A stretch of DNA of 63,821 bases, filler included, from Neoconidiobolus thromboides FSU 785 (GCA_025603075.1; 9 parts of 9 records of this genome joined end to end with filler, not necessarily neighbours in it), one strand, 5' to 3'; positions 4,857 to 26,112 are shown, counted from the first letter of the whole stretch. Program-made: numbers and translations. Notes: generated from the letters alone by a model not told the origin.

Positions 4857-4895
4857 TTGATTTAAAAAATTTGTGTAATCGGGGAGAAGCTTTGT

Positions 4896-4908: not shown

Positions 4909-6735
4909 TTTTTTAGAAGTGTTAGTTGAAAAGGGGGTAGTTTTAGCTTAATTTAGAAGTAATTACTATATTTAGACAAATGTCCAAATTGGGCAATCGC
5001 CAAACTTAGTGCAGTTGGTTAGATTCTGGGGGGTTTTGATAAGGAGAAAAAAAGTAACAATAATTTTTGAAAAATTCAAGGATTTTGTTTTGTAATAATG
5101 TAATAATATCATTTTGTTATAAATTGATGGTAAAAAAGACACTTTAATTTAATATTTTGGATTACTAATTTAAAAGTAAATTGAAATTATTTATTTATAA
5201 ATTTAAAAGATAGCAAATGAAATTTATTATTTGAAATAAAAATGTTCATTTCAATGCTATTTCTAGCGAAAGGGATAGCATACCATTTAATTTATACTTT
5301 TAATTTTATTTGAGTTTTTAGATATCTTTAAGTGCTTAATCTAGCGAATAGTTACTAAGTTTTAATACTTTTAATTTTAATATAAAGCTTATTTCAACAA
5401 TTTTATTAAAACAAAACTAACATTTACACTCAGTGTAAGAACTCTTTTTCCAATCGTTTGATTGTTAATTTTTGCTAAAAATAACTTTCTACCCTCAATT
5501 AACCCTAACTATTACTATAGCTTGCATACGTCCCGCCCCTATTTTATTATTAATTTTCCAGGTTAGATCAACGAATTTATTTCTTTTATAAAAAACACAA
5601 CTTAAATTTAGGACCTTTCTTTAATTTTTTTATACAAAAATATTATCGTTTTTAATTTGTAGAGTAGATTAAATTATATCAAAAATCAAAACCTTTTTTA
5701 TCCCCATTGTTTTACAGCGGATACTTCCTTGCTTTAAAAACTGTACCTTTATGTTATGCAAAGTTTATTTAGCCTAGAATAGCTTTTTAATGTGTTTATT
5801 GAGTTTTATAATCATCAGCATAACTAAAAAGAAAAATTAAAGTTGTCAACGGAAAATTATAAAACATAAATCATTAGAATTTCTATTCAATTAAAAGAAA
5901 AGGGCAAAATTTAAAAGTTCCATTTATTTGAATCAGAGAATGTTCTTTTAAATGGCTTGTCACTGGGCTTATTTGAAATTATAGAGTGATTTGCTTTTAA
6001 GTTAAGTTAAATAAAAGTTACAATTAAATATAAATTATACTTATAATCATCCTTTAAGTATGATCTAACTTTTTAATATTAATATTAAATACTTGATAAT
6101 TCTATAATTAATTCAATCATTGGTTGAAATGGCTGAAATTTAATAAAAATTCTAAAATTAGCTGGTGAAACTAAAAGACATTAAAAGTGGAGAAAAGACC
6201 ATTTGGTTTCAATGACAAAAAGAGCTGTTAAGTTGGCTTGAAGAGAATTTGTTTGATATTTGAGCTTGAAGTGAACTGAAAATATGGGGATTAACATGAT
6301 AATTGGGGTGTTGTTTTGCTTTATTTGTTTCATTAATTATTGAATTATTGTTAGTTAGTTAAATGAATAATTATACAGCTCTGTCTGTAGACACTTATGT
6401 CCTGAAAAGCTTTCTTTGCCTTTGCATATATCAATTCGAAATAAAAGTTAATCGAGTAGTTATAGTATTTTTTAGCAATTATCTCATTTGAAACCACTTT
6501 TTTTCGAATTGAGTCACATAAAAATGAAGGTTTTCAAGGGATGCAAATATCTACAGGTAGGACTGTAAATAAAATATAGTTGAAATAAACTCTTTACAGT
6601 TGTTGTAACTCTTACGAAATATTTAGTAGTAATTTTTACAATTAAATAAATTTTGAAAATGACTTTTTAACACCTAATGTATATTTTAGTAGAATCCTGC
6701 TACAAACCTTGCTCTTGAACTGTAATAGTCTATAT

Positions 6736-6832
6736 GGGGCTGTTTTTTTTAGTTTCATTATTCTTCCATTTTTTAAGTGCTATTTGAGTGGAGAGATTGT
6801 AGTAAAATTCTTAAACAAAAAAATACATCCCC
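6736..6832 (+). mobile_element. MITE copy
   Basis: GGGG...CATCCCC termini, ATAT TSD; accounts for the spurious ORF 6709-6900. Confidence 0.85.
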
Positions 6833-8605
6833 ATATTGATTATGTCAATTCTAGTTATTATACGAAATTTTTATCATTTTTCAACTTTAGAACTGTCTAA
6901 GTTCAAATATTCTTATGCTAACTGTTTATTTAGGAATGATATTTAGACATAAACTCACCAAAGCCTAAGGATTTAGTTTTTAAAAGAATCAGCTTAGCAA
7001 ATAATAACCGAATAATTTTTACAAAACATACCACATTTAAAATCAAGCAATTATATTTTTAAATAACAACCTAAAAAATAGAAATATTGTATAAATGCTT
7101 CACATTTTAAGTCAACGTAACAATCATTTAACTAATAGAACAAAGTATCATTTCTAATTATATATATTATTATGGCAATAATAACTATCACAAAAAAGTT
7201 AATGACTCTAGTTAATATTATAATACTAATTTGCAACAACAATTAAAAGCTAAAAAACAATTCAATCATAATTTTTATAACTTCGATTTTATCTAAAGTA
7301 AAGCAATTTTAATATTTAGCATTAAAGTCGATAGTAAAATTACTATAATAATACTATACCTTCTAGTTATGTTGATTGATGCCTGCGAATTAAACATGTT
7401 CAATAATTGAAATTCTATAAAACAAAATAGTAATGTGTGATGGTGATACTAATTATAGGAAAACTGAGAGATTTATTGGTAATGACAATTGATTAGAAAT
7501 AATACAACATTAATTATAAATCATGTATATTGAAACATTATGATGAAGATATTCATGATTTGTTAATCCATAGAATAAAATAGCCCCTCAGCTTGTAAAG
7601 TATTATTTTATATCCCATTTACGCATTAATTCAATTAGCATTCTAAAAACCACCTTCAATAATAATATACTTTTTATAGCAAGGCTGGATTAGAGTGTAA
7701 TCCTTCTTAAAGCAGTTGAAGGTCTGGATGAATTATTGAACCTGATAATTAAAAATCGATCAACTTTTGGCCTTGTTATTGAGCTATTTTTTCATAATAA
7801 ACCTAACTAAATGAAAGCTAAAGGTATACTACTATTTTATAAAGAGTCTCTTTTATCCTTGATCAGCTGGACATGCACAAGTTAAGTTTTGAGCTCATCA
7901 AATAAGGAGCTCAGTATACATTTTCTAGATGATAAGTTGATTTCAAATGAATATCAATTAACTAACTTTAAATCAATTAATTGATTAACATCTTCAAGCT
8001 CCACCATAGCATATAACTATAATGAAATAATAACCCACTTATACGCGAGATAGAGATGCGATCGCATTTTTTTACTAAATTTAAAAATAAGCACAAATTA
8101 AAAATAACTTTTATATTTTATTTTTATATTTTATTGTAACAATTAATAATTCAGAAGTATCCGAATTCAAGAATAAAAATAAAGATTACCTTTAACTAAT
8201 TATAGTAATTTGGCCACCTAATGTAAAACTGAAGTGTTCTGTACAGATCAAACTGAGGTTATTGAGCTTAAAGTTGTGGCAAACAAATGATATTAAATTA
8301 ATATTTATACATCTTATTTTCAATTCTGATATTTAAAGTTAAATCTTTATATTAATTCTACTTTGACTTTAAACAAAATGTGCCAATATCGTCTCAATAC
8401 CTTTGGCCCACTATGAAATCACTTTCCAAATTTAAACCCGAACTTTTAAGTTTTCTTGGTTTCGAATTCATTAAACAAAAAAATGAATTAAATACTAAAA
8501 GTTTAATTAAGTTTAAAATAGTGTTTGAATTTTGAATTAAAGAATAGCAATTGATTTGCGACTTTGAATAAATCAACAAAAGTAACAAACTTGAATTTTA
8601 TTTAA

Positions 8606-9208
8606 TTATTTAAAACTGATATATTGATTTAAAAGATCTAATTGTCGTTGATCTTCCGATGTTAAGTTATTGAGTTTCGGTTTATCTTTTTCTGTTAGTC
8701 CTATAAGTGGTGGTATCATTGAAGACCTAGAATCCCCAAATGAATCATTTGGATTACCAATATAATATTTATCCAAATTCATTTTAATATCCTCTAAATC
8801 CTTAAGCCCATACTTAGATGGGGAGACTAACTCATTTTTATCTACTTCCATTTGATTATAATAATTAATAATATGATATTGGTGATTATCTTTAGTTCTA
8901 ATAGTTAATGTTTTTTTTATCAATAAAGTTTCATTTGTTGCTATTTTATCCTCTTCGCGAGGCATTTGAAAATAAATAAAGAAGCCTTTTCGCAGCTTAG
9001 AATTGGACCATGACATACCATCGGACCATCGCTTGATTCCACTTTTGAGTTCATTAATAATGAATGTGCTACCTGATCGTATTTCTTGTTTCTGTTGATA
9101 GTTTAGACGTTTATTACTTAAATGAAAGTGGCCCCGGTTTGCTGCTTCAAGTAAAATCATGGCTTCGGTGATGCTCGGTAAATAGCCATGGAAGTGCTTA
9201 GGATCCAT
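8606..9208 (-). CDS. Gti1/Pac2 family (WOPR domain) transcription factor, paralog 2 (most canonical, Pac2-like)
   Basis: FHGYLPSITEAMILLEAA, IRSGS.FI..E..SGIKRWSDGMSWS, LIKKT, HIINYY, and a C-terminal EDQRQL motif. Confidence 0.92.
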   Translation of the reverse strand: MDPKHFHGYLPSITEAMILLEAANRGHFHLSNKRLNYQQKQEIRSGSTFIINELKSGIKRWSDGMSWSNSKLRKGFFIYFQMPREEDKIATNETLLIKKTLTIRTKDNHQYHIINYYNQMEVDKNELVSPSKYGLKDLEDIKMNLDKYYIGNPNDSFGDSRSSMIPPLIGLTEKDKPKLNNLTSEDQRQLDLLNQYISFK

Positions 9209-11002
9209 CCCAAAGTAAGGTTAAAAAAAGTAAAAATTATTTGTCCTTGAGTTTATATAAATGAATAAATTACTTATGCTTTTAATACTAAAGAGAGTTA
9301 ATTATTGGCTTATTTTTAAAAGAATGAAAAAATTACTAATTCAAGCTTATTCCTTAAAAGGATTCTGTATTGTTTAATTTGTATATTTATTTATACTCTC
9401 CGATTTACCTTGTGCCACTAAATTAGAGCTTTTATTTATTCGTATATTGAATGATTTATTATTATTTTAAACTATAAACAATAAAAGCTTTTAGTTTCAC
9501 CTTAATTTATATTGAGCTATTCCTTCCTTTTACACAAGTAAATTATTAAACTTTATAACACAGTTCATATCCATGTTTATTATTAAATGTTTTAGCTTTT
9601 TGTCATTGTTAAATCCTTGCTTTATTATTTATATTTATATATTTTAACTGTTAGTCTATTTTTATATATTTATTTAAAACTTGAACAAAGGTTAATTTTA
9701 TATTGATTTCCATAAAGCCCAATATTTTTAAGCCACTCCGTTGATAAACTATTGCAACTCTATCTTAAATTGATTAATTACTCATTTGAGAATTTTTTGG
9801 TGTATTCAATCAAAAAACATAAAAATTAGACTTTAAAAAACTGTTTATACAGATATTTTAACTGTAAAAACTATCACTAAAAAAGCCATAAAAGAAACGC
9901 AATAGTTGTAATTTTGATTTTTAGTTAAGCTTAGTATCCCATACAAAATCCCAAATTTAATTAAACTTAAGGTCTTTCACTCATTACAACTTGTTTTGTT
10001 ACAATTTATTATAGTGACTTGTACCGGATAGTCCAAACCAAATCTATATTAATGGTCTATTTTAAATAAAACAATAAAAGAAAGTTTAATCCAGTTGATA
10101 CATAATAGTTAGCATTTCACTATTATTTAATATTGTTCTCACCCACCCATTCTCAAATATAACAAAATCAATACTATATCAACTGCATAATTTTTTAATT
10201 TTATGTCATTTTAAGCTTTTATACTTGTCCAAAAATAGAAATATTCCAAATAGGGGTCTATTCAAAACACCTCAATTGCATAATTTTATTTTTTAGGTCT
10301 CTTCTAAAAATATCACTTTACCTTAAGCTTTTCATGTTAATATTTAAATATCGAACATTACTCTTAAAATATTAAAGATGAGTTTGAGCTTATTCAGTTC
10401 AGACTTTAGCTTAATGGCAACATTGTGGAGTAAACAAATACCGGAGTTGACTAAAAAAGGATGGCATTGTTAGATTTTATAAAATAAATCTTCGTTTTAA
10501 AATAATTGGATTAATCAGTTATTTAGAAGAGTTGAACCATTTATGAAAAAATTAAAGGGCAAAGACTTAGCTTAGAGTTTTAATGTCAAAAGCAGGCTTT
10601 TACCTTATTACGTTACAAGCAAGTCTTGAATTGATTACTAATATCAAACTCTAATAAACATGTATCGAAAAACAGTAAAGCAGTCACTGATCTTAAAAAT
10701 CCCCCTCCAATTTGGTTTTTTGTTAATAGAAGACTTGGCATATGGGACTTAAATATGCAAATGGTCTTTCCCTTTTCATCATTTTTTCATTTTTACCCAG
10801 TTTAAAGTCTGGAATTATTAGTAAATTTCAAAATAAGAGGCATACTACTGTAGTTGAAAATATTAGTATTCATTTGCTAATTTTAAAAGCTTAATCCCAT
10901 TCTTTTTTTATAAGGGTTAAATACATAATGTCTTAGAATCTTTGAAAACTATAATGCTAAGAGATTGAAACTGATTACACAACCTCTTTATTTTATCCAT
11001 GT

Positions 11003-11057
11003 TGTATATTATTACTATTTTGTGTATTATTACTATTTTGTATATTATTACTATTTA
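11003..11057. repeat. Tandem repeat, ~20-bp unit (TGTATATTATTACTATTT) x3
   Basis: Three near-identical units read directly. Confidence 0.7.
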
Positions 11058-11861
11058 TATTTGAAAATCATTTTTATACCAAGAGTAAACTATATGTTCT
11101 TCAACCTTTTAATTTTAATTATTTTTTCATAAATATAGGCTTCTTTATTGTAAAAGTAGGCTCCATAGAACTTTATTAGCAAAACATATACTATTAATTA
11201 ACAGCTGAAATATCCTAGAAGTTCTTGTTTTGTAGCTCATCTTTCTTCGTCATTAATTTTATCAATTTCATCTATGAATAACTCACTTGAAAGCTTTACC
11301 GCCCTTTCAAGAGTTTAAAAAATATATGTGTGGATACATCTTTTATTTAAGGATTTTACTAACGATTTTTCCGCTCAAGTGGTACTTAAAAATGGAAAGG
11401 GTGATGAAACCAAAAAAACATCCCCCCACATACTAAACAATTTAATTTACAAATAATCTGTAGTTAGATTATATTCATGACTAATATAAAAATCATTATG
11501 AAATTAATTTTTATATAAACTACTTTTAACTTAATTTTATATTAATAAACCCTCGCATTACGATCATCATATCAGACGACTTTACACTTTTAGGAATAAG
11601 GTTAAAAATGCACACTTATTAATAGGATCTAGTAACATGTACCATAAAGATCAAATCCTTTAAAACCTTGACCACATTTATTCAACTACATAAACGATGA
11701 TATTTATAGTTAAAGATAAGAGTCTAGATTGTCATAAAGCGGTAAAATTTTTAACAAAAGTTCTTGCTACGCATATAAAATAAATCAATATCAATATCTA
11801 GATCACTTTGATATAACTTTTTAAGTTGTATTTTGGAACTTGCTATTCTTAGTAATTATAT

Positions 11862-11957
11862 ATAGATGTATTTTTCTGTTTAAGGATTTTACTAGTAATC
11901 TTTCCACTCAAATAGCGCTTAAAAAATAGAAAAGTAATGAAATTAAAAAACATCCCC
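11862..11957 (-). mobile_element. MITE copy (further degenerate copies at ~3551-3642, ~11331-11426, ~12200-12240, ~12641-12738)
   Basis: Central AAATAGCGCTTAAAAA core and AAAAACATCCCC end. Confidence 0.75.
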
Positions 11958-13173
11958 ATATACTTACTTTTTAATTTAACTATTATTTTTTTAATGGTTG
12001 ATAAAAGCTGTTATGAAATTTAGTGCTTAAAGTTTAATTATTTTATACTAACTATAAAAGACTCAAAATTATAAAAAAATTACAATAATTTATTAAAAAT
12101 ATTAAAAAAAGCTACTTAATAAAGTATAAAATCATATTAGTAACGATAGGAAAAATATGTATTTATACTAAAACATTTTTTGATATAGCTAAAAAAAAAT
12201 AAGAAATAAAAAAAATAATGAAGTCAAAAAAAACATCCCCGTATAATAAAATACCATGCTTTATAAACAAATAAAATTGTTATTTATAGTATTATAATTT
12301 TAGATAAAGCTGGTAACTAATAAATTTTAATGTATTAATAAATTATATAAAATAATAAAAATAAAAACAATGGTAAAATAAACTAAATAAAAAGTATAAA
12401 TTTTAATAAAGACAAAATATAATGGCTATTTAAATAATTAAAAAGAAACTGATATTAAAACTTTTTTACTTAAACTAATTTACATAAGTAATATTATTTT
12501 ATTTAATGTATTTTTAATTAAAGTATAATGACTTTAAAATAGTAACATTTATATTTATTTAAATATAAATATTTCATGTTATTTTTCTTAAAATACTTTT
12601 AAAAAAGCTAAAAACCATAAATACCAAGCTAGGACTATATGAGGGTGTTTTTTTAGCTTCATCACTTTTCTCATTTTTTAGGCATTATTTAAGTAGAAAA
12701 ATTGCTAGTAAAATTACTAGACAAAAAAACAGATCCTTGTGTATTAAAAATTTTACGTTTTTAATTTAATTTCATAAATTTTTGTATTATTTTAATAAAA
12801 TAAAATTGAAGTTTTGTAAAGTTGAATAAGGATTTTATTATTTTTTTTAAATTTAAACTTTAGTATTTAAATCAGTTAAAAATTTAGTGAAATATGAATA
12901 ATATTTTATGTTATATTTATAAAAACTAACCTTATTTTTAAACATTTTTTATTTTTTATAAACTTTTTAATCTGCTTTTATATAAAGATTAAAGTTAGTG
13001 AGCACAGTTAGGTTAGAATTAGTTTTATACTTAAATAAAATTATTATTCATGTTTATACTTGTCGTTTTTTGAATATTTTGGCAAAATAGAAATTTACAA
13101 CTTTAAGCTCTGAAATATAGCTTGATTTAAAGTTTGATCTTATAAAATTACTATATACAATTTACATGTAGTC

Positions 13174-13246
13174 GCCTTCTTGGCTCAGTTGGCAGAGCGT
13201 CCGCCTAGTAAGCGGAAGGTCATTGGTTCGATTCCGATAGAAGGCA
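13174..13246 (+). tRNA. tRNA-Thr(AGT)
   Basis: Full cloverleaf: acceptor GCCTTCT/AGAAGGC, D arm GCTC/GAGC, anticodon stem TCCGC/GCGGA with AGT at 13207-13209, TTCGATT T loop; T-run terminator ~10 bp downstream. Confidence 0.97.
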
Positions 13247-13591
13247 TAATATTATCTTTTGTTAGTCGTTATTTTTTAGTTTGTGCACAAGTTTCAAAGC
13301 TATAAACTGTACTAATTAATTTAATAACTGAATACAGTTATTTCTAACATGAGTTTGGGATGACTCTAAATTTTTTAGAAAAATCTTGTTTTTTGTATGT
13401 CTTACTAGTTATGTTAGTTTGACAAACATTGAAACAGCAATATGTATTTTTAAAAATTGTTTTTAAAGATGATACGGTATACTTAATATTGTTGGTTTTA
13501 TTATTTAATACTATAAGAAGCCTATATAAAATAAAAATTCAATATGCACAGTTTTGACTTAATTAATTAGAGTTAAATTAAACTATATTAG

Positions 13592-14245
13592 CTAATTTAA
13601 AAGGTGTAATATTTTGCTACATTCATAAGAAGGGAAATTAGACGTTAGATCGATAGTAGATAAAGAAGTTGGATAAGATTTTGGGGAAGAGATACAATTA
13701 ATCTTATGATTATTTGGAATACCAATATTGTCATTATTTTCATTATTGTGAGAGTTTATAGTATTGAATATAACATTGTTTAAAGTGACAACTTTACCAT
13801 AATGTTTTGATTTAGTACGATAGTCTTTAATATAGCCAAAGTCATTGATAATTCCATAGACGCTTGGGTTTAAGTTTAGTTCCGAAGGTACAGTCAAGCA
13901 ATCAGTTCTATTCAAATAGAAATAGTTTATGATACAAATAGTTTGATTTTTATAATACAATTTAATGCTCTTTTTACATAACACATCATTTAATATATAA
14001 TTAAGCTCTCCTTTTTCTTTTTTCTCATAATAAATAAAAAAACCTTGTTTAAAACTCGAAGTATTCCACTTCTTATCATCTGTCCATCGTTTTATTTTAG
14101 TATCCTTTGCGGAATAAATTACCGTTTTTCCATGATATATTTTAGTTCTAATTCTTTCACTTTCCATTGCTATAGTACCTTGTATACTTGCTGATGCAAG
14201 CAAGATCGCTTCTTCAATGGTTGGTATATAGCCTATAAATTCCAT
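13592..14245 (-). CDS. Gti1/Pac2 family (WOPR domain) transcription factor, paralog 3
   Basis: FIGYIPTIEEAILLA, KRWTDDKKWNTS, GFFIYYE, LCKKSI and IINYF motifs. The true ATG is at 14245; the ORF-track start 14248 is TTG. Confidence 0.9.
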   Translation of the reverse strand: MEFIGYIPTIEEAILLASASIQGTIAMESERIRTKIYHGKTVIYSAKDTKIKRWTDDKKWNTSSFKQGFFIYYEKKEKGELNYILNDVLCKKSIKLYYKNQTICIINYFYLNRTDCLTVPSELNLNPSVYGIINDFGYIKDYRTKSKHYGKVVTLNNVIFNTINSHNNENNDNIGIPNNHKINCISSPKSYPTSLSTIDLTSNFPSYECSKILHLLN

Positions 14246-14912
14246 CAATTTTTACAAAAAAAAAGATGTTATTACTGCTAACTCAAACTATTTATACTTT
14301 CTAAGTTCCAAATAGAAAGAGTTAAAACTACAAAAAGAAGCCAAATAAATTAAAAACGTGGGGAAATTAATACTTTATTGTTGCTGATTTGGATGTTCAA
14401 ACTACTTTAATTTTATTTCTCATCATTACTGATTTTTAATGGCTTGTTTATTTGTCAATTATAAATTGATTGTTTTACAAAATGAACTTTAATATAATAT
14501 TATAGAATTTTATCAACTTATTTTCAAAAAAATTGACCACGTTTTATATCAACAATATTGATGACTAGTTTAAAATTTTTGTAAAATTCATATAGTATTA
14601 TCAATTATCATATCATTAAACAATAAAAAATCCTCTTATTTGTTAAATTGAAGGGACACCTGTTAAAGTTTTGCCATACTATTAATTGACATACAATTTA
14701 GAGCACTGTTATTATGCTTTAAATTCCAAATAGTTTAACATTTGTAGTAATATTCTAAATCTTATATCAGATATAAAGTTAAAATTTGAACACAGTGTTA
14801 TAAGTGTCAAAACACCTAAGAAACACCTAATCTTAACTATTATGATAATAAAAATATGATAGAAAATGGAGATAAATTTAAATTTTGCTCAAATCAGATA
14901 AATTAATCGAAG

Positions 14913-15679
14913 TGGAATAACAATTTGAATCTGGATTATGCTTTTCTCAAATTGAAAAAATTAGTTTTACACCCTCTAATTTCATTTTAAAAAGGATGCT
15001 TACTAAATAGAGACCTACTCTAGCAAAACAACTTTGTTACTACTATTAATAGTAAAGAAACTTATAAAAATAGCAGTAGATTGTCAAAAATACAATACAA
15101 AAGATAACACTAGTTTTAAAAAGATAACAGACTAATAACAAAACAAAAGGCACATGAAGATTGGTACAGAGATAGGCATTAATTTTTTAATAAATTCCCT
15201 ATATTTACGATGCATAAAGATGCACAATGATGAAATAAAAAGAACATTTCTATATATTAAATATCTTTAAGGGAAATAAATGGTGATTTGCATATTTGGA
15301 ATCAAATTTTCACAGCTAGATTTAACTAGTATTAGTAAAATGTCGGTATAACTTTATCCGAATAACTTCCTACTTTATTTGTAATAAGACATCTAACAAA
15401 TGTCTTATTTATCATTTTTTAAATTTAGGAGTACAATCTTATTTTTTGAAGACTCCTTTGAAAATCGCTGCAGTCTTTAGTATGTTTTTAATTATCTTTG
15501 GAAAAACATCTTACTTTATTGACCCTAGCTTAATTGAAAGAATACACATCTCTTTAGAACATGATAAAAATTCAACTAGAAAGTATAATTTTAAAATGGC
15601 AAGTTTGTCCAGTATATGTGAAAATTATTCCAAATATATTCAGTTTTCAAAGAGGTCCAAAATTTTATTTAAAACTTGA
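14913..15679 (+). mobile_element. Possible highly decayed Ty3/Gypsy pol relic
   Basis: WNNNLNLDYAFLKLKKLVLHP resembles the RT-RNase H connection motif W....AF..LK..L..P; RIHISLEH...C near 15540-15640 loosely resembles the integrase Zn finger. Full of stops. Confidence 0.3.
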
Positions 15680-16416
15680 GTTTAAGGATTTAATAATAGT
15701 TGGTGATGAAGGACTAAAATTGTTTTTTATCTATATTAGTTGAAAAGTATATTAATCTTTTCCCCAAACTTTTAAACTACAAACTTTAAACAATGCTGAT
15801 AATTAAAAATGAATCTTAAAAGCAAACATAGTAGCTGTTTTTTTAGTAAAAAATAACATTTTAGGCATTTTTATTTCTATATAAACTTACAATTTGGGCA
15901 TGTCTTTTTGGGTTTCACTATTTTTTCTATTTATAGATGTCATTGAATTGAAAAAACATTAGGATTTTCTAAACTAACCTTTTTGATTTTGCAAAAAATA
16001 GGTCATAGGCTATAGTAGCAATTTTTTAAAATTTTTAATAAAGGATTATTTTTGTCTAAAATAGTTGATTTTATTTGCACTACAAAAAAAGAAAATATTT
16101 GTATTCCACAATAACCAATAAGAAAGGGTCGGGGCCACTTTATTGTTGATTTACAATAACTATTCAGAATATCAAAAACTAATACTGTAGTGAAAAACTA
16201 TCTATGTTAATCCAATCAATAGTATTTTTTGATCGTAATTTGTTTTTTCTAATAATTATGCCTAATTTTATAAAAATTAGCTTTGTAATTGCAGTTGATT
16301 AGTTGTTACTGCACTACAAAAGACGCTCATTCTTTACTGAAAGTTAAAGAAATAGTAGGTGTTTTTTGATAGAAATAAATAAACACTTCTAATTCAGACC
16401 ACATAAAGATTCATTA

Positions 16417-16489
16417 TGGCTTTTACTGGAATTGAACTAATGGGCTTTCGTTTTCTAGGCGGATACTCCGTCAACTGAGCCAAGAAAAC
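16417..16489 (-). pseudogene. Decayed copy of the tRNA-Thr at 13174-13246
   Basis: Reverse complement GTTTTCTTGGCTCAGTTGACGGAGTATCCGCCTAGAAAACGAAAGCCCATTAGTTCAATTCCAGTAAAAGCCA aligns without gaps to the intact tRNA with 17 substitutions; stems broken, anticodon now AGA; both are followed by TAAT. Confidence 0.85.
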
Positions 16490-17659
16490 GATCACGTGCA
16501 GCATTTCTGTTAGGCTATATTTCTATCATGTTTTGTCTATTTAATTATACTTGACATATTTTGAAAGTAGATTTTAAATCGCTAAGTTATATATAAAGTT
16601 TCATTGCTCCAAAATGACATAGTTCGGATTTAAGTTGGTTTTTCCATTCTTCTAATGTGCTATTGTTTCATACTTATGGCTTTTTCAGGGTTAAATCAGG
16701 GTTACTAGAAGTTCAATTTCAAGTGTGTACTGTCTATTTATGTATTTAAAACTATAACTTTAGGCACAAATTTTGTTAAAGCCTAAGGAACTAGCTTTTT
16801 AAAAAATATATAAATAGTTACTGAAGAAATCTTCCAAAAAACTGCACATTTTCTTAAATAGCTATATAGGTTGCATTATAAGGTAATTTCTAAAGTAATC
16901 TAACTTTGGGCTAAGTTAATTTGAAAGCCATTGATTACAATGGAACACATTTGTTATCTAAAAGTTAATTTTTGTGTACAATTTAAACCATAACGATTTT
17001 ATACCCTTAGTTGAATGGATCTGCCCAAAAGGCTAGGCTACTTTAGAAATTACTTATAATCTGTTATGAATTTTCAAGCAGGTTGTTTTATTGATTCTAA
17101 ATTTTATATGAATTAAAATTGTGCCGAGATGGAGATTACTTTATTTATCAATTTAATGTTTTGAATTTTAAGTTCAAAATGGGTGGTAATTATCTTATCT
17201 TTGGAGAAAATGTTATCTTACAATAACTTTAGTAGTTAAATTATATTTATTAAAATATAAATAAATGAAAAGAATTCAGATTTTTTATAGGATCAGTACT
17301 TACTAGCAAGGATAGCTTATTTTAAGGATTTGGTACTTTAAAAGGTTAAATTGAATTTATTCCGTATTTGCGTAAGGTTAATTATATATAGATGGACCAC
17401 TTATTTCAATTACAGATATAATATGTACAACAATATAATACAATAAAATGAATAAAATAAAATAATGAGGTTTATAAAGATAATTAAGTAATACGAATTT
17501 AGCATTTCAACAAGTTTAACTTTAATTTTTCCCAATTTTGTTAAAATTGAATTCTAGATTTTAGAGTATTCAGTTTTATTAATTTTCAATGGAACTTGAA
17601 TGTGGCATGAATAACTATATAAATAGAGAAAAACGAATCTTTCTTTTTTGTAAAAATTA

Positions 17660-18313
17660 ATGGAATTTATAGGCTATATACCAACCATTGAAGAAGCGAT
17701 CTTGCTTGCATCAGCAAGTATAAAGGGAATGATATCAACTGAAAAAGAAAGAATAAGGACGAAAATATATCATGGAAAAACAGTTATTTACTCAGTAACA
17801 AACAGTAAAATAAGGAGATGGACAGATGACAAGAGATGGAGTACATCCAATTTTAAACAAGGTTTTTTTATTTATTATGAGAAAAAAGAAAAAGGAGAGC
17901 TTAATTATATATTAAATGATGTGTTATGTAAAAAGAGCATTAAATTGTATTATAAAAATCAAACTATTTGTATCATAAACTATTTCTATTTGAATAGAAC
18001 TGATTGCTTGACTGTACCTTCGGAACTAAACTTAAACCCAAGCGTCTATGGAATTATCAATGACTTTGGCTATATTAAAGACTATCGTACTAAATCAAAA
18101 CATTATGGTAAAGTTGTCACTTTGAATGGCAATAATTTTGGCACTATTAATGTATTAAATGATGACAATGATATCAATGGTAGTGTGAAACATGATAATG
18201 GTGATATGTATAATACAGTTAGTTTTACTCCATCCCCAAAATCATGCCCAAACCCATTAACTGCAATTAATAGCATACTTAATCCACCCTTAAAGAACAT
18301 GACCGACTGTTAA
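17660..18313 (+). CDS. Gti1/Pac2 family (WOPR domain) transcription factor, paralog 4 (inverted partner of paralog 3)
   Basis: Same WOPR motifs as paralog 3; shares identical 63-bp and 273-bp tracts with it. Confidence 0.9.
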   Translation: MEFIGYIPTIEEAILLASASIKGMISTEKERIRTKIYHGKTVIYSVTNSKIRRWTDDKRWSTSNFKQGFFIYYEKKEKGELNYILNDVLCKKSIKLYYKNQTICIINYFYLNRTDCLTVPSELNLNPSVYGIINDFGYIKDYRTKSKHYGKVVTLNGNNFGTINVLNDDNDINGSVKHDNGDMYNTVSFTPSPKSCPNPLTAINSILNPPLKNMTDC

Positions 18314-18703
18314 ATTAATTATTTTTTATTTACTTACAATAAACTAAATATTTTGTTAAAAAAGCAGGACTATTAATATTATTCATAAGTTACAATGGTA
18401 TAAATAATTGCTAATATAAAGTAGGCAAGGCCCTAAAATTTAAAAGTGGCTACATAAAAACAAATTCCGTATTCCACAGAAATTAAACGTGGTTTTTGAT
18501 CAAAATATGGTATTTTCCACTGTTAAACGATTTGTCATTATATGGTATGAAATTTCCTTTAATGAAACTGAAACCACAAGGATAGGTTGAATTTATATAT
18601 GCACCCCTGTTATCTTTAATGTATGAAAAGCAAAGGGGCTATTTTTTAAAGATGACAATAGTATTCACTATCTAATGATCACAGTTATATAGTAATAATT
18701 GAA

Positions 18704-18838
18704 CTATATGTAGATAAGTTGTCCTTCTACAGGTATGTTTGCTTCCCATAACCCTTCAATAAATACACATAGCTGCTTTAAATAAGAGGCAATTGGGGCT
18801 TGCTCAACTGACGTTTCACTAAGATAGGTCAACTTGTC
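18704..18838 (-). mobile_element. Possible Ty1/Copia gag relic
   Basis: Reads DKLTYLSETSVEQAPIASYLKQLCVFIEGLWEANIPVEGQLIYI, resembling the UBN2-type gag helix pattern (SYL.....L..A..PV.E..LI.YI). Confidence 0.3.
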
Positions 18839-19815
18839 TAAAAATGGTGTATTATAAACTAAAAAGTAAAGACATTTGTTTCAGTTTAAAAACAGCGATA
18901 ATAAACTAATTCCATTATGCATAGGTTTATTAAAATAGGTGGTGGGTTTGTTGTGGGAGCATAGTAAGCTTTAATAATATAGTTTAATTGGAAAAAAAAC
19001 AAAAAAATTAATAAACAATTTAAGGATTTTAAATATAGTTTTTTGCATTGATTTGTTGAATAGTTTACTGTTAGTGTTATAATGATATTGGATATCATGA
19101 TTTATTAATGTTGTTTTCTAAGTAAATTTAAGTTGATGAATGGTATATTTACAAGATACTTTAACAAATAAAACATAGATTATCTAAAAAGAGAAACTTA
19201 ATACAAATTGACACTAAATAACTTGATGTAAAATTGAACCAACTTTTTAAGTTATAAGTTATTATTATAAACTATTTAAACACCCTTTTTAAGCCTCATT
19301 ACTTGCACTTAACATTCGAGCTTCAAGGTTTAAAAGATAGAAAATCCTTCAATTTTTGTTGTGAAATACCAGTCTAGATTTAAGAGTTTCTATAACGTAA
19401 GTTATCTATATATTGTTATTTTTTGGCATAGATGAGGAGAACGACTTTCAAATTAATACTCTGAAGTAGAAGAGTTAGTGTTTATATCAGTTGATTCGAA
19501 GAAGAATCAGCTCAAATAAATATATCGATAAAGTTGTAAGCTACTATACGAGTTTTTAAATTTTCACGTTCTTATCCTCTAGGTCAACGCTGTATTTCAG
19601 TAAAGCATTCAAGTAAGAGTAGTTAGTCATCTTACCTCTAGCAAATCATTCCAAACAAACGCATATGGTGATTCAAGATATATAAATTTCAATTAATTAA
19701 CCAGAGTTTTATAAAAAATATTCTGTTATTCTAATCAATACATTTTTATTAAATAGAAAGATTGAACATAGCAAAAACTGATGAAGGATAATATCTTAGT
19801 GACCTTTAATGGAAG

Positions 19816-20795
19816 TTAGATTATTTTCTTTGTGTTACTGATTTTAGAGAATAGTAAATTAATTAGTTTTCCATAAACCTTATCATGAAGTGGTAATATA
19901 AGCATAGGGTTGGCTAGAATAAAAGAGCAGAGAGGTATAAAAATAGTAATTGAAAAATAATACCTCAACCTAAAATCTCAATCAATGGGTATCATTATGG
20001 GATAGTAGTTCATTGTAAAAATAGCAGGGGAACCGCAACTGATACAATATAGGATAAATATAGTCGCTTTTATTAGTAATATTCCTGTGGGGACTTTAAT
20101 TCTTTCATAATTAGCTTTTTTATCAAAGTGAATAGTACTAAGTAGGCTACTGCTACTATCAGGATTATTTTCACTATTATATGTATTATTTAGAGTAACT
20201 ATGGGGTTACTCTTTAAAATTCTGCAATTCCTTAGTACTAACATAATTTTGAAATAATATACACAAATTATTATTGTGTTGAGCATGAAGCTAAGCATCG
20301 TAAAAAAGTGATACACTTTGCCAATAAATCCACAGTTAGGTAAGAGTGTACATATTGCCCTAGATTCAGTCATGGTGAATTCATTGTAGTAAGGAGTAGG
20401 TAGCGCAATGTAAACAATATCATCATAATAACAATTCCAATGGCACATAATACCCACTTATGTATACAGTGTTGGTTGATAGTAAAACAGTGCTCTAGAG
20501 AAAGCAGTGTAATACCAGAACTACTACATACTGATACCAAAGTATGAAATATTTGAAGGACTTGACATAAATATGTATCAAGAATAATGTTACAACTTTT
20601 TGACAAGGATAGAATTCCTTGAACTCATCATATAGAAGTAACTATATTAAGTAAAATTGTCAATATCATAGAGTTTAAGCCTGATGATAATGATCTATCC
20701 ATCCTAAGTAAAAGCATTAATACACCCACTAGGATATCAATTAACAATACAATCACTACCAAAGGATTACCAACAATTTCTACTACTTGAACCAT
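19816..20795 (-). pseudogene. Rhodopsin-like (class A) 7TM receptor pseudogene, paralog of 22754-23752
   Basis: ATG at 20795 (MVQVVEIVG). Tandem TGA TGA after TM2, a frameshift between the 20370-20606 and 19978-20457 ORFs, another TGA at 19978-19980, then TM7 ANPMLIL and a stop at 19816. Confidence 0.8.
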
Positions 20796-21168: not shown

Positions 21169-21253
21169 GGGAATGTTTTTTTTGATTTCGTTATTTTTCC
21201 ATTCAAATAGCGCTTAAAAAATAGAAAAATAATGAAATCAAAAAAACATCCCC
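21169..21253. mobile_element. MITE variant with two left-type ends (fold-back form)
   Basis: GGGAATGTTTTTTTTGATTTCGTTATTTTTCCA ... TAGAAAAATAATGAAATCAAAAAAACATCCCC; ATTT TSD. Confidence 0.7.
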
Positions 21254-21610
21254 ATTTAAAAACAAATTTAAAAAGCTAAAAATTTAAATAGTTAGCAATA
21301 TTTTACTTGAGTTAAATAAAGCAGTTTCTTATTATTGCTTTAATATTCCAATATTTTAATTCAAATATCTATTGCACTTATTCAACTAAGCTAATAATAA
21401 ATAATTGTATATTATATTTATGAATTATAGTTTGTTTTATATATATAATTCAAAGCATATAACCATCAGCTTCATTTAAAATTATAATGCTGTACAAACA
21501 GCTATTTTTATTTAAAGTACAATGTTTTATTATAATTATATTTTAAACTTTATTTACATTCTGAGATTTTTATTATTTTATTTTTCTTTAAAAGTTTTTT
21601 AAAACTATAT

Positions 21611-21805
21611 GGGGGTGTTTTTTTTGGCTTCATCACTTTTTCTATCTTTTAAGTGTTATTTAAATGGAAAAACTATCACTGAAATTCTTAAACATAAAAA
21701 TACATCCCCATATATAAGAGTGTTTTTTTGGTTTCATTGCTTTTTGCATTTTTTAAGCGTTATTTAAATGGGAAAACTATCACTGAAACCAAAAAAAACA
21801 CCATT
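21611..21805 (+). mobile_element. Two tandem MITE copies (21611-21709 and ~21717-21805)
   Basis: First copy has an ATAT TSD; both share the unusual AAAACTATCACTGAAA variant. Confidence 0.75.
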
Positions 21806-22753
21806 ATATATTAAAAAAAGATTAGTAAATACTTTTTAAAGCTATTATTATATAATATTTGATATTATTTTTTACTTTTTACTATTAGTTTTAATAAAAT
21901 GAACGTTAATATTTAAAGGATTGATGTTTTAGGCTTATAAATGAATAAATTCATTATAGCTTTTCTAACAAAAGTAGCTTATGGATTAATTAGATAATTT
22001 GCAGTTACTAGTTCAGTACAATATTATTAAAACCTTTTATAGTCCATTTGAAAGATAAATTACTATTAACATTAAGTTTAAATTTCAACATACTTGAACT
22101 TCCAATTTAGCAAGTAATAAAACTTAAATGAACTTAAAGTAAGCAAAAATACAATAAAACGTTAAAACTTTGAGATTAGATATTATTAGTTGGAACTTAA
22201 TTGATGTTATTAACTTGTATTTTTACGAATTGTAGTTACAAAAATAAATATAAAAATAAATTATTAACTATAGTCAATCCAATAATTTTTGTTGTAAATG
22301 TTAAAATAAAATAATTGAATGTTCCAAGTATTTTAAGAATACTACTTTATTAGAAAGATAGTTAAATTTATTTTGGATCTAGAAGGTTGGAATTCGAAAC
22401 ACAGAACATCATTTACTAAATTGAATGGACTTGTAAAATGATAATATTTAGTTGGGCTATTAAAATAAATATCTTTGAATACTCTCAACTTCTTATTTAT
22501 AAGAGATACTGGCTACGAATTCGATTTATGTATAAAATGAGCATTAAATAACTATTAGAAATGTTGATATATGATTAGTAAATAAAATAGATTATTTCAT
22601 TTCTGAAGCTTGTTAATGGTCACTTGATATGATTTGAATTAAGGTGATTTAATAAATCCACCAATAGAATTAAATACCTATAATTCTCGAAAAGTTAGAA
22701 TAAAACTAAATAGAATTAAATTGATACTCAAAAGCCTTTTAAATCTTTTAAAA

Positions 22754-23752
22754 ATGAACAATACTAAATTGATAGTGGAAATCATTGGGGATATTTTAGG
22801 AGTCATAGCATTGATATTAAACATCATGGTTGGTATAGTTGTTATTCTACTTGTAAAAGAAAAATCATTTCGATTAGGATTTAGTTTTATTTTATTTACA
22901 ATTACTATCGATATTATAATACCTATTGTTGCCTTAACACAAGAAATCATATCAATAGTAAATGATTCGAATGTAATGCTCAACACTCACTCTTGTCAAA
23001 TATTAGGGGTATTTCATACATTAATACCAATATGTAGTAGTTGTGGTGTATCATTGCTTACTTTAGAACGTTATTTTACTATTAAACAAATTAATGTAAG
23101 TAATTGGTTTTTATGGTCAGGCGGTTTAGTTATTATATCAATATCTTTTATATTATCTGTACTTACAGCTACTTATAATCAATTCCAACTTATGCCATCA
23201 CGAATGATGTGTATGCCATTACCAATCCAAGGTACTTTTGGATCAGTATATTACTTTGTTATGACCATTTTATTAATCTTGAATACTAGTATAATAGCTT
23301 ATTGTTATTCAGGTATTATCTCAATAATGATAAAGAAGCCAAAATTAATGTCCCATTCATTAAATTCATATAATAAAGGGAATAAGAATGAATCAAAACA
23401 AGAGTTAACTGAAGAAGAACAGAATTCAATAGAAGAAACTGATAAGCAGTTGATAGATCAGAATTCTAGAAATCACAATTTATCAAAGAGAGTACTTAAT
23501 AAGGCTATTTTATTCGTTGTTTGTTATACTATTTGTATTTTACCAGCTATTTTTATCATGGTTTATTATATTATTATGAGTTTCTTAAATATTGAATTTG
23601 TGTTAAGTTATGAGCTATCAATTATTATCTTCGCTTCTATTTGTTCTTTTTGTATTGCTAATCCTATTTTATTACTTCTTTTACATAATCGAGTTTCTAG
23701 TAAACTAATGAATTTATTTATGAAGTTTAACTGTTTTATTAACACAAAGTAA
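22754..23752 (+). CDS. Rhodopsin-like (class A) G-protein-coupled receptor
   Basis: Seven hydrophobic segments, Cys at the top of TM3 (SCQILG) and in ECL2 (MMCMP), LTLERY (DRY-like), long charged ICL3, ANPILL in TM7; intronless; first ATG at 22754. Confidence 0.85.
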   Translation: MNNTKLIVEIIGDILGVIALILNIMVGIVVILLVKEKSFRLGFSFILFTITIDIIIPIVALTQEIISIVNDSNVMLNTHSCQILGVFHTLIPICSSCGVSLLTLERYFTIKQINVSNWFLWSGGLVIISISFILSVLTATYNQFQLMPSRMMCMPLPIQGTFGSVYYFVMTILLILNTSIIAYCYSGIISIMIKKPKLMSHSLNSYNKGNKNESKQELTEEEQNSIEETDKQLIDQNSRNHNLSKRVLNKAILFVVCYTICILPAIFIMVYYIIMSFLNIEFVLSYELSIIIFASICSFCIANPILLLLLHNRVSSKLMNLFMKFNCFINTK

Positions 23753-24160
23753 AGAACTATTGGTGGTGTAACGTAATAGGTTTTTATAATTAAGGTTTTA
23801 TTTTATTAGATGACTTAATTAGAAATCTATAACAATAATTCAAATCTTTTTTTACATTTGAGCTTGAAGTCAATATTAACTTTTAGTTTGAATCTTTTTT
23901 CATTAGGTAATACTGGGTGATTACTAAAGTCTAGCACTTGAATCTTTTTATCTTTTTTTTAATAAAATAAAAAGTTTATCATTTTATGTTATTATGCGTA
24001 TATTAATTTCATTATAATTAAGTAGTTTAGTAAATTAGAATAAATTTATAAAATCAGTTAATCAAATAAGATAATCATACTTGACCTTTTAATTAACTAA
24101 AAGTGACGAAGCTAAAAAAAACATCCCCCGTATTAATATAGAAAATATAAAACAAGGTTT

Positions 24161-25413
24161 GGGAGTGTTTTTTAGCTTCATCACTTTTTCGATTTTTAAG
24201 CGCTATTTGAGTGGAAATTTTGTTGGTAAAATTCTTAAACACAAAGATACATCCTCATTTATACTATTAAGAATAATAATAATAGAAACTAAAGGATGCT
24301 AACTAAAAATAAAGTTATAATTAATAGACCTATAAAAATAAAAGATATTAATTGTATTAACAATAAAGGAGGGTGTTTTTTTTGACTTCATTACTTTTTC
24401 CATTTTTAAGCGCTATTTGAGTGAAAAGATTGTTGGTAAAATTCTTAAACACAAAAAACACTCCCAAATGATTAATTTAAGTTTTGATTATAAAGCCTGT
24501 TGTTAATATTATATAAATTTAAATTAAATTCAATAAAAAAATAAAATATTAAATAAAACTAATTAAAAACAGAGTTAGTTATTATATAGAATAATATAAC
24601 GTAATATAATAATATTTACAATATTATTTAATTTAATAATTTTAATAGTTAAAATAATATAAAAAACAATATTGATAATAAATAATATTACTTTTTATTG
24701 AACTTTAAGAATATGATATATTTTAATACCAATTTATAATAATTATAATATAGCTTCATTTATTTTGTAATATTACTTAACTATTAAACAATATAATATA
24801 AATAATTTATCTTTATAGTTTAAAAAATTTAATAATGAGGATGTATTTTTATGTTTAAGAATTTACTAACAAATTTTCCACTCAAATAGCGCTTAAAAAT
24901 GGAAAAAGTGATGAAATCAAAAATGTTCCAATATATACTTTTGTTAAATAAAGGTAGTTTTGAAAAAATTGTTATGTTATATTATTTAATAATAATAATA
25001 ATTTTGTATTAAGTTAATTTGTTTATTTATTACTTATGATTAGTTGATTTGGATTTCTTTAAAATATTTAATTTAAATAAAAAATTCATTTAAAAATAAT
25101 AAAATTGAAAATATGATAAGCACTGAGTATTATAAATAAACTATATTTGTCTAATTTTTGTAAAAGCAAAAATTAATTGTTAATAGCTATTTTATCAAAT
25201 TAATCTTAGCTAATTAGACTGGTATTATTAACAATCCAAAAGTCTCAATCTTATACAGGTTACTTTTTTTGAAAACAGTTTGATGCCTAAAAAGTTAACT
25301 TTTAATATATATATGAGGATGTTTTTTTTGATTTCATCACTTTTTCCATTTCTTAAGCGTTGTTTGAGCGAAAAGATTATTAGTTAAATTCTTAAACACA
25401 AAAATACATCCCC
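24161..25413. mobile_element. MITE cluster in an extremely AT-rich tract (24161-24256 +, 24369-24465 +, 24837-24930 -, 25315-25413 +)
   Basis: Four recognisable copies; the last has an ATAT TSD. Confidence 0.8.
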
Positions 25414-26112
25414 ATATTGTAATTAACTTTTTTCTAAGATTTTTGGTCTAATGTTGACAAATAATTATTGATTATTAAATATATGAGGGTATTTTTTGGG
25501 CTCATCTCTTTTTAATAAGACTATTGTTACTTCATTTCAATCACAAAATCTTAAAAGAATAAAACTCAATCATTATTTATAACAAAATTTATTCATATGC
25601 AAATTTAGATAGATGTTATTATTTATTTTAGTATCTTCCATTTACTTTTTGTTTCTACTAATAATATGCTTAGGATAAACAATAGTGTTTTATGGAAAAA
25701 GATCAAAACGGATAACTAAATTTTGAAATAAGATACAAATACAAATTTGTTAAAAGGTTCGAATTAAGTAATATATAACAACAATCATATTAAATAATAT
25801 TAAGTTTTCCTATTAAATTAAAATGAAATTATGTCTTCTATTTTTGTTTCCAAATCTAACGTCATTTCTATTGTAAGTGTTAGTCCCATAATAAAAATAG
25901 CATTGATTTAATAATAAAACATGGGAATTTATGCTCCATTTTATTAATTCAATTGAACATTTAATTCCACCGATTACTAAAAAAACGGCAACATTAATTG
26001 GGATAAACAAAGTAGCCGATAAAGTTGTTTTATTTAACCATTGAATCTAGAAGATGTGTGGAAAAAAAGGAATAAAAACTCAAATATAACAGTTCAATTA
26101 ATTATCAAAAAA

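Follow-up and report, generated by a model that had tools for sequence, protein, structure and literature searches.

The arms of the palindromes on the human Y chromosome undergo gene conversion with one another, and in mitotic recombination crossovers can accompany such conversion. In Ogataea polymorpha and Komagataella phaffii, inversion relocates one MAT locus to a region of silencing; both orientations have been demonstrated and are inducible, and in Ogataea the inversion acts as a switch by virtue of this silencing position effect. In other gene families, selection is known to preserve islands of divergence within paralogs that otherwise convert. A genome usually contains one or a few genes for transcription regulators of the WOPR type, and regulators of the Wor1 type bind a TTAAAGTTT-like motif, often within their own long upstream region. 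To our knowledge, the developmental regulators of Entomophthoromycotina have been little studied. [quoted passage not shown]

Here we describe an inverted pair of WOPR genes, copies A and B, from the insect pathogen Neoconidiobolus thromboides FSU 785 (GCA_025603075.1), which sit within a cluster of four WOPR genes. A and B are very probably old head-to-head duplicates in this four-gene cluster, in which two stretches are held identical by recurrent intrachromosomal gene conversion. The phenomenon as such is already known and the pair represents a new example of it: the gene conversion is real, but ordinary.

Anatomy of the inverted WOPR pair

The window, i.e. the whole stretch of 63,821 nucleotides (filler included) that was analysed, contains an inverted repeat with arms of 486 nt, which are 93% complementary and have 3376 nt between them; by a wide margin it is the longest repeat that the repeat finder detected in the piece. 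Its arms comprise the 5' two-thirds of the two divergently transcribed WOPR genes (Table 1). Three public DNA runs (X2, X3 and X4) were compared with this sequence as de Bruijn contigs of 31-mers, which drop rare variants. In X2 and X3 the spacer is covered between the two 63-nt tracts by single contigs of 3474 and 3477 nt, respectively, which confirm the head-to-head layout; the outward-facing pair around a 3.4-kb spacer that a preliminary description of this DNA had reported is borne out by the repeat finder, by the alignment and by these contigs.

A per-base count along the alignment of the two coding sequences finds positions 1-63 identical, 33 mismatches between positions 64 and 191, and identity again over the 273 nt from 192 to 464, which reproduces the earlier figures exactly. 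Upstream of the ATG a single mismatch at position -1 is followed by 15 matching bases, after which similarity fades. The 3' tails align poorly and with indels, yet both contain a TCCCCAAAATC / SPKS.P motif. Judged by sequence, the two tails are homologous and very diverged; to call them unrelated, as had been done, captured their divergence and overstated it. A hidden gene in the spacer is out: we found no convincing ORF there (none longer than 77 aa), zero RNA coverage in RNA run X5, and just one decayed tRNA copy.

Table 1. Features of the inverted WOPR pair (positions counted from the first letter of the window)
Feature	Position	Strand	Basis and remarks
WOPR copy A, intact 217-codon ORF	13592..14245	-	ATG at 14245, stop at 13592-13594; called as gene in NCBI record
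WOPR copy B, intact 217-codon ORF	17660..18313	+	ORF list and translation
Left arm of 486-nt inverted repeat	13779..14264	.	Repeat finder and pairwise alignment
Right arm of 486-nt inverted repeat	17641..18126	.	Repeat finder and pairwise alignment
63-nt identical tract, copy A, codons 1-21	14183..14245	-	Per-base count; partner 17660-17722
63-nt identical tract, copy B	17660..17722	+	Per-base count and run contigs
128-nt unconverted segment, copy A, codons 22-64, with RWTD..W..S motif	14055..14182	-	33 mismatches
128-nt unconverted segment, copy B	17723..17850	+	Per-base count and run contigs
273-nt identical tract, copy A, codons 65-155, second half of folded WOPR domain	13782..14054	-	Per-base count and contigs
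273-nt identical tract, copy B	17851..18123	+	Per-base count and run contigs
Diverged tail, copy A, codons 156-217, predicted disordered	13592..13781	-	Alignment and structure prediction; RNA contig in X5
Diverged tail, copy B, predicted disordered	18124..18313	+	Alignment and structure prediction
3.4-kb spacer with both promoters	14265..17640	.	One decayed tRNA copy inside

The assignment of both copies to the WOPR/Gti1-Pac2 genes, already made in the preliminary description, is supported by the Pfam profile Gti1_Pac2 (PF09729; copy A 47.5 bits, copy B 50.3 bits, cutoff 23.6), the match to which covers residues 3-79 only, i.e. the first conserved region, and by the predicted fold. In an AlphaFold model of copy B residues 1-155 are folded, with a pLDDT mostly above 90 over residues 1-140, and pLDDT collapses at residue 155, the end of the 273-nt tract. 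The top four Foldseek matches of this model in the PDB are 4qtj_A, 4qtk_B, 4m8b_R and 4qtk_A (E 5e-9 to 1e-7, probability 1.00, TM by target 0.58-0.69), the next match having an E of 0.04; 4qtj and 4qtk are Wor1 WOPR-DNA complexes, and 4m8b is YHR177W. The predicted structure of copy B is consistent with the two-region, single-domain WOPR fold. The conserved residues of the R..RWTD..W..S and KK...h.NYY...L.PS motifs are found in both proteins, which keep the invariant R31, R53, W54, D56, W60 and S63. R31 and R53 are invariant across a 30-sequence alignment, and either may be the arginine that contacts DNA.

RNA contigs reveal transcription of the locus. An enrichment of the Wor1 motif in the spacer was considered and rejected, as the window contains five exact TTAAAGTTT sites (3.9 expected), and the spacer accounts for two of these. 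A role of A and B as master morphology regulators is an assumption, made by analogy with distant family members.

Old duplicates with homogenised tracts

Run X2 is identical to the reference and may not be independent of the assembly's own reads, whereas X3 and X4 clearly differ from it. In X2 the contigs of the 273-nt and 63-nt tracts have depths of 894 and 864, compared to single-copy depths of 442 for tail A, 480 for the middle segment of A, 473 for the spacer, 438 for the middle segment of B and 453 for tail B. The 273-nt tract again has twofold depth in X3 (85 vs 44-49) and X4 (44 vs approximately 24), so that tract contigs reach 1.85-2.0 times the depth of their private flanking contigs in the three DNA runs, and the middle segment of A forms a single-depth contig of its own (188 nt in X2, 198 nt in X3). 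Tracts at double depth between flanks at single depth mean that the tracts exist in exactly two copies and that no consensus collapse has occurred, which answers an objection to conversion that the preliminary description had itself raised.

The middle 128 nt of A and B are approximately 26% diverged. Nei-Gojobori counts yield 18 synonymous and 15 non-synonymous differences (13 amino-acid changes), in agreement with the earlier remark that many of the mismatches are synonymous, with pS 0.71, dS approximately 2.2, dN 0.16 and dN/dS approximately 0.07; identity at third positions is 55%. Silent sites are saturated in this segment and in the tails, which are barely alignable. The duplication of A and B is old, given this saturation of the middle segment; promoters, tails and middle segment have all diverged to saturation. 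Against this background the 273-nt tract has no difference at approximately 51 synonymous sites. With synonymous divergence as in the middle segment, the probability of zero synonymous differences is approximately 3e-28 for the 273-nt tract and 3e-8 for the 63-nt tract, and none of 200,000 permutations of the 33 mismatches over 464 sites had a mismatch-free run of 273 or more, which rules out chance. Purifying selection alone is rejected as the cause of tract identity, since silent sites are identical too. The tracts show no signature of GC-biased conversion, their GC content (0.25) and GC3 (0.24) being no higher than those of the flanks.

Homogenisation has continued since the strains diverged. 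In X3 the double-depth contig of the 273-nt tract differs from the reference by 13854 C>T (G131E) and 13925 G>A (synonymous), both in the two copies; in X4 the tract carries 13925 G>A only, likewise at double depth, and neither run has a contig with the reference letter. Since these SNPs lie on a single double-depth tract contig, they are new mutations that have been copied to both genes. Three strains possess three tract haplotypes, each common to both copies, while they differ by just approximately 0.4% in the spacer. The appearance of tract SNPs in both copies at once, in two other strains, is direct evidence of concerted evolution. Together with silent-site saturation and the two-copy tracts in the read sets, these shared SNPs support the earlier proposal that the genes were duplicated long ago and have been homogenised recently or still are. 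Perfect identity is not universal among strains: in X3 the 63-nt tract carries 14192 T>C in copy A alone. The tract contig of X4 is only 229 nt long (13790-14018) with variants at minor depth, and the tract may be shorter or heterozygous in this strain; a minor unconverted haplotype could be hidden in the strain contigs.

As a side observation, three of the six middle-segment SNPs in X4 carry the letter of the partner copy (14075 and 14100, at minor depth, and 17725), a pattern suggestive of shifted conversion boundaries, but uninterpretable from contigs.

In our reading, conversion spans codons 1-21 together with approximately 16 nt of leader, and codons 65-155. It may be limited to those stretches that purifying selection on the folded domain has left similar enough for strand invasion; the boundary of the longer tract fits the fold, as the tract stops at residue 155, where pLDDT collapses. 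The diverged middle and the indel-rich tails would act as barriers to heteroduplex extension and so fix the boundaries. We infer that the middle 128 nt escape conversion in this way between their homogenised flanks; the divergence barrier would account for the upkeep of the mosaic pattern, not for its origin. Occasional crossovers might invert the spacer as a by-product, and a regulated switch is unneeded for anything seen.

Alternative readings and the orientation of the spacer

The orientation of the spacer relative to the tails has a bearing on several alternatives, and RNA run X5 provides an observation on this point. The private 5' segments of A and B are both transcribed in X5, and a 718-nt contig leads from private B sequence (17693-17850) through the tract into tail A (13781-13495). 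Words of tail B are absent from this run (0.00), although the 5' segment of B is present; in RNA runs X6, X9, X10 and X11 their fraction is 0.38-0.58. Depth arithmetic on the 718-nt contig seems to fit a joining of 5' B to tail A better than the reference order. However, contigs of 31-mers can take either path through a 63-nt or 273-nt repeat and cannot phase it, and neither arrangement fully explains why tail B is missing while both 5' segments are present. The contig hints at an inversion isomer or at a misjoined reference, nothing more.

On the one hand, the reference may have been misjoined across the 273-nt repeat, the fixed arrangement being the 5' half of B with tail A and the 5' half of A with tail B; conversion would still apply. 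This is possible, although we doubt it. The X5 contig and the missing tail B speak in its favour, X5 shares its organism label with X2, and the contig graphs of X2-X4 are equally compatible with all four arrangements. However, the support consists of one RNA contig, mate pairs may have resolved the scaffold correctly, and 5' A (depth 13.3), if joined to tail B, should bring tail B into X5, from which it is absent, barring clipping by the assembler. In the reference, the C-terminal tail given to each gene may be the wrong one.

On the other hand, the mosaic might have arisen from a recent duplication in which a third, diverged paralog overwrote the middle 128 nt, or selection for two DNA-binding specificities might purge conversion of the middle, as the preliminary description had suggested. 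We regard this pair of explanations as improbable. At least nine WOPR genes in the genome are potential donors for a patch, but the saturation of tails and promoters means that the duplication is not recent, and no paralog closer than approximately 60% to either middle segment was found. The paralog on scaffold MU626315.1 was rejected as donor: it is approximately 58-59% identical in the middle segment and approximately 70-75% elsewhere. Across all segments the nearest paralog gene has approximately 70% identity to both A and B, and protein database searches returned no protein nearer to A or B than the known paralogs, which argues against any third donor. In favour of two specificities, the unconverted segment holds the conserved RWTD..W..S motif and the two invariant arginines, and the selected islands of other gene families offer a precedent. 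The low dN/dS, the retention of all invariant residues and the conservative nature of the changes beside the motif (K/R, K/R, N/S and S/N) speak against it, and we see no positive evidence in the sequences for two selected specificities.

A flip-flop switch, in which crossovers within the 63-nt or the 273-nt tract, either regulated or frequent, invert the spacer and swap promoters or tails and the isomers specify cell states, appears very unlikely to us. The geometry suits it, with inverted identical tracts around a promoter-bearing spacer, conversion is demonstrably active, and the X5 contig could be read as an isomer. However, a misjoined reference would yield the same picture with no switching; both genes are intact in either isomer and would be little different, and nothing but a disordered tail would change places; the locus shows no sign of a centromere, a telomere or other silencing context, and no heterochromatin feature was identified; and homologies as short as these might favour conversion without crossover. 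Of the switch proposed earlier, the geometry that allows inversion stands, while for the switch itself the X5 contig is the only hint. It is just as unlikely, in our estimate, that the spacer is present in both orientations within one strain, where an inversion through the 273-nt tract would re-pair each promoter and N-terminal DNA-binding half with the other tail. If true, this would alter a cell-fate regulator heritably and reversibly, in an insect pathogen of an early-diverging lineage, through a recombinational switch outside mating-type loci.

Finally, that the identity of the tracts is an artefact produced by assembly or polishing is scarcely credible: short-read assemblies can collapse near-identical repeats, but collapse of diverged copies would leave bubbles, and the twofold depth in three runs, with single tract contigs, no alternative-letter contigs and private flanks at single depth, rejects it.

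The pair among WOPR genes and known inverted repeats

The pair offers a clean, small-scale case of concerted evolution, in which strain data catch new mutations already present in both paralogs and the tract boundaries fall at the edges of the folded domain; as such it is useful for teaching and annotation. Short-read variant calling inside the 63-nt and 273-nt tracts will be unreliable. Alone, the pair reveals no new mechanism; for that, both orientations would have to be demonstrated and linked with a phenotype.

Our data also point to an expansion of short WOPR genes, and to their clustering, that had not been reported for Entomophthoromycotina. Exact-protein look-ups found the A and B proteins in the reference assembly only, and their nearest relatives outside this genome are short WOPR proteins of Entomophthora muscae (KAJ9050751, KAJ9050753 and KAJ9056609), annotated as 'Global transcription regulator sge1' or 'Gluconate transport-inducing protein'. 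Like A and B these are short (227-237 aa), and two of them share a contig, their accession numbers differing by two; they are, however, just 28-36% identical to A and B. Candida albicans Wor1, Saccharomyces cerevisiae YHR177W, Histoplasma Ryp1 and Fusarium Sge1 share the Gti1_Pac2 family with A and B, the predicted fold of which matches the DNA complexes of Wor1 and YHR177W. A and B differ from these regulators in their much smaller size (217 aa) and in the very short linker that joins their conserved halves; they have only approximately 23% identity to the solved WOPR domains and are part of an expanded and clustered family.

As in the flip-flop systems of Ogataea polymorpha and Komagataella phaffii, a segment that could invert lies between inverted repeats, and the pairing of genes and flanks would be exchanged by a crossover. 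In the yeasts, however, one MAT locus is silenced by the inversion, whereas at the A/B locus no position effect is seen. The pair also resembles duplicated genes in concerted evolution generally, and inverted paralogs and palindromes with conversion between their arms, such as the palindromes of the human Y chromosome, in which inverted arms likewise enclose a unique spacer: in both, the arms are identical within a genome and differ between lineages, with new mutations found in both arms. Unlike the Y palindromes, the arms of the WOPR pair are tiny (486 nt), lie inside coding sequence, and are broken by an unconverted island of 128 nt.

The WOPR genes and their surroundings

Neoconidiobolus thromboides FSU 785 is an AT-rich (GC ~25%) entomophthoralean fungus. 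On its scaffold MU626502.1 (assembly GCA_025603075.1), four ORFs of the window match the Pfam profile Gti1_Pac2 above its curated cutoff, with rhodopsin-type GPCR and UDP-glycosyltransferase genes (also by Pfam) downstream of them. Two of the four, copies A and B, are divergently transcribed from either side of a 3.4-kb ORF-free spacer. In the AlphaFold model, based on an alignment of 30 homologs, pLDDT exceeds 90 at most positions of residues 1-140, and the tail is disordered from about residue 156. Significant PDB matches of this model are limited to the Wor1 WOPR-DNA complexes 4qtj and 4qtk and to YHR177W (4m8b), at probability 1.00; sequence similarity between these chains and the N. thromboides proteins is weak. 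By Pfam and predicted fold matches, A and B are WOPR genes. Both proteins are short (217 aa) and belong to a lineage-specific clade, the closest relatives outside N. thromboides being Entomophthora muscae proteins of 227-237 aa with 28-36% identity. A role as master regulators would be an assumption taken over from distant relatives.

N. thromboides has an expanded and clustered set of WOPR genes: four lie in the window, three on scaffold MU626315.1 of the same assembly and at least two elsewhere, and the second cluster also includes UDP-glycosyltransferase (UDPGT) and GPCR genes. Its stretch 88627-109262 (L003) again holds a UDP-glycosyltransferase, three WOPR genes and a 7tm_1 GPCR, in an order rearranged relative to the window; the counterpart of A and B there is a single gene, P0003, with 64% aa and ~70% nt identity. 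In E. muscae the short WOPR proteins KAJ9050751/KAJ9050753 and KAJ9049954/KAJ9049956 are close neighbours on two contigs. Clustering of WOPR genes may be general in Entomophthoromycotina.

Each WOPR gene of the cluster borders, upstream or downstream, on 3.4-4.4 kb that lack convincing ORFs. By the standards of compact fungal genomes such stretches are long, and they may be large regulatory regions like the one upstream of Candida WOR1. A MITE-like element of ~105 nt, bounded by terminal inverted repeats (ATGGGGATGTTTTTTTT ... AAAAATACATCCCCAT), has at least 10 copies in the 27-kb MU626502.1 piece and many in L003, at 77-90% identity. One copy lies inside the first of two adjoining long ORFs without a Pfam match, which may be a degraded mobile-element gene with a MITE insertion. 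The positions of a tRNA-Thr gene and its decayed copy are not mirror-symmetric, so that the copy does not belong to the inverted WOPR duplication. Two GPCR genes make up another head-to-head paralog pair: pieces of the minus-strand gene, which is interrupted by an intron or has a broken frame, lie on two overlapping ORFs and are 31-45% identical to the plus-strand gene. No identity tracts were found between these two copies, so the GPCR pair is not converting.

Features of the WOPR region, with contig depths in DNA run X2
Feature	Position	Strand	Remarks
WOPR ORF	4050-4856	-	Gti1_Pac2
WOPR ORF	8606-9208	-	Gti1_Pac2
WOPR copy A	13592-14245	-	Gti1_Pac2
WOPR copy B	17660-18313	+	Gti1_Pac2
Inverted pair	13779-14264 / 17641-18126		
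63-nt tract	14183-14245 / 17660-17722		one contig, depth 864
273-nt tract	13782-14054 / 17851-18123		one contig, depth 894
Middle segment A	14055-14182		188-nt contig, depth 480
Middle segment B	17723-17850		188-nt contig, depth 438
Tail A	13592-13781		depth 442
Tail B	18124-18313		depth 453
Spacer contig			3474 nt, one 63-nt tract into the other, depth 473
ORF-poor stretches	4857-8605, 9209-13591, 14246-17659		
tRNA-Thr(AGT)	13174-13246	+	Rfam 67.7 bits; ARAGORN; ~350 nt downstream of copy A
Decayed tRNA copy	16417-16489	-	~77% similar, inverted, in spacer; Rfam 21.5 bits, below threshold
Long ORF	380-1222	+	280 aa
Long ORF	1198-1743	+	181 aa
GPCR	19978-20606	-	
GPCR	22721-23752	+	
MITE-like copies	710-810, 6735-6835, 11865-11960, 12640-12737, 21190-21250, 21600-21715, 21723-21830, 24160-24260, 24370-24470, 24830-24925, 25310-25418		

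Identity tracts between copies A and B

A repeat finder returned a single outstanding inverted pair (486 nt, 93%). Recounted base by base, the tract coordinates and mismatch counts of the preliminary description proved exact: A and B are identical at CDS positions 1-63, differ by 33 mismatches in 64-191 and are identical again in 192-464. Upstream of the ATG, a mismatch at -1 is followed by 15 identical bases and then by decay. The tails, described as unrelated, do share an SPKS.P motif; outside it they are saturated and indel-rich.

The A/B duplication is old, because third-position identity between the copies (55%) is close to that with the MU626315.1 paralog (38-50%) and because the middle segment is so diverged, with 18 synonymous and 15 non-synonymous differences (pS 0.71, dS ~2.2, dN 0.16, dN/dS ~0.07). 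At pS 0.71, zero differences at the ~51 synonymous sites of the 273-nt tract have P ~3e-28, a 63-nt tract without synonymous difference has P ~3e-8, and 0 of 200,000 mismatch permutations gave such an identical run. Protein constraint is ruled out as the cause of tract identity, since synonymous sites are identical too; conversion is therefore required. Together with the strain haplotypes described below, these values uphold the earlier reading of an old duplication with homogenisation.

Logan contigs, built from 31-mers, of three public DNA runs (X2, X3, X4) and one RNA run (X5) were placed on 13000-18900. The X2 contig graph splits exactly as predicted for two real copies, and tract depth compares with that of neighbouring contigs as 85 vs 44-49 in X3 and 44 vs ~24 in X4. 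No alternative-letter contigs were found within the tracts in these three DNA runs. Consensus collapse is excluded by such double-depth contigs without alternative letters; a third genomic copy of the tract is absent, and the identical tracts are genuine sequence.

The 3' end of the 273-nt tract is codon 155, the exact end of the folded domain in the AlphaFold model, beyond which the tail is disordered and indel-rich; the 5' boundary of conversion lies a short way before the ATG, at the start of promoter divergence. These edges suggest that conversion is confined to sequence held similar enough for strand invasion by purifying selection, and the 26%-diverged middle segment would now act as a conversion barrier. 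Its original divergence may stem from selection that preserves two specificities, as previously proposed, an idea that gains no positive support from the data: dN/dS is low, the invariant R31, R53, W54, D56, W60 and S63 are all kept in A and B, and the changes beside the RWTD motif are K/R, K/R, N/S and S/N. Import of the segment as a patch from a third paralog is unlikely, as identity there reaches just 58-59% with the nearest paralog and nothing closer was found among the predicted proteins.

Homogenisation in other strains

X3 and X4 represent other strains, whose spacers are ~0.4% away from the reference; in X3 this amounts to 12 SNPs and 3 indels over 3.5 kb. The 273-nt tract of X3 is one double-depth contig of exactly 273 nt with two changes relative to the reference, 13854 C>T (G131E) and 13925 G>A (synonymous); the double-depth tract contig of X4 carries the 13925 change and lacks that at 13854. 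Three strains have three tract haplotypes, and within each strain A and B share one, which would need parallel mutations if there were no conversion. Within species-level divergence, homogenisation must have occurred at least twice. The boundaries of the 273-nt tract are equal in X2 and X3, and the mosaic is therefore stable, not one-off. Homogenisation is looser in the 63-nt tract, as expected of shorter homology: in X3 copy A alone has 14192 T>C, a change also seen at partial depth in X4. Ongoing ectopic conversion between A and B is thereby supported and strengthened.

New letters in X4 at 14075, 14100 and 17725 are those of the partner copy, the first two at ~1/3 depth, and the long tract of X4 is broken, with a 229-nt contig at 13790-14018. 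X4 may be heterozygous at these sites, or may have a second haplotype whose conversion boundary differs.

Gene conversion from arm to arm is a familiar phenomenon in inverted paralogs. Our literature search found no paper connecting WOPR genes with gene conversion, and the strain-resolved demonstration of homogenisation is mildly new, as is the context of WOPR expansion and clustering.

Linkage and orientation of the two copies

The inverted geometry permits a flip-flop: the genes would trade promoters after a crossover in the 63-nt tract, and tails after one in the 273-nt tract. All four arrangements fit the DNA contig graph, as repeats of 63 or 273 nt are too long to be phased with 31-mers. 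One 718-nt contig of the RNA run X5 (depth 34) leads from the B-private 17693-17850 through the tract into tail A and its 3' UTR, ending at 13495; the A-private segment has its own 177-nt contig (depth 13), which ends 11 nt before the tract. X5 has no tail-B contig; in a second index query tail-B words scored 0.00 in X5 and 0.38-0.58 in four RNA runs of another study. Linkage of the B 5' part to tail A would fit the X5 depth arithmetic better than the reference linkage, which would make tail B the deeper branch, so that it should survive assembly. Neither linkage fully accounts for an absent tail B alongside both 5' segments, and simplification by the assembler is enough to produce the pattern.

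As a lead, the X5 contig can be read in two ways. One is a misjoin of the reference across the repeat, which is rather doubtful; the other is that inversion isomers of the spacer exist. A regulated switch built on such isomers is much less probable still, and of the flip-flop proposed in the preliminary description the geometry stands while the switch is unproven. The finding is of modest interest, unless long reads show two orientations. Unlike the A/B pair, for which no position effect of this kind is indicated, Ogataea has an inversion that becomes a switch through a position effect.
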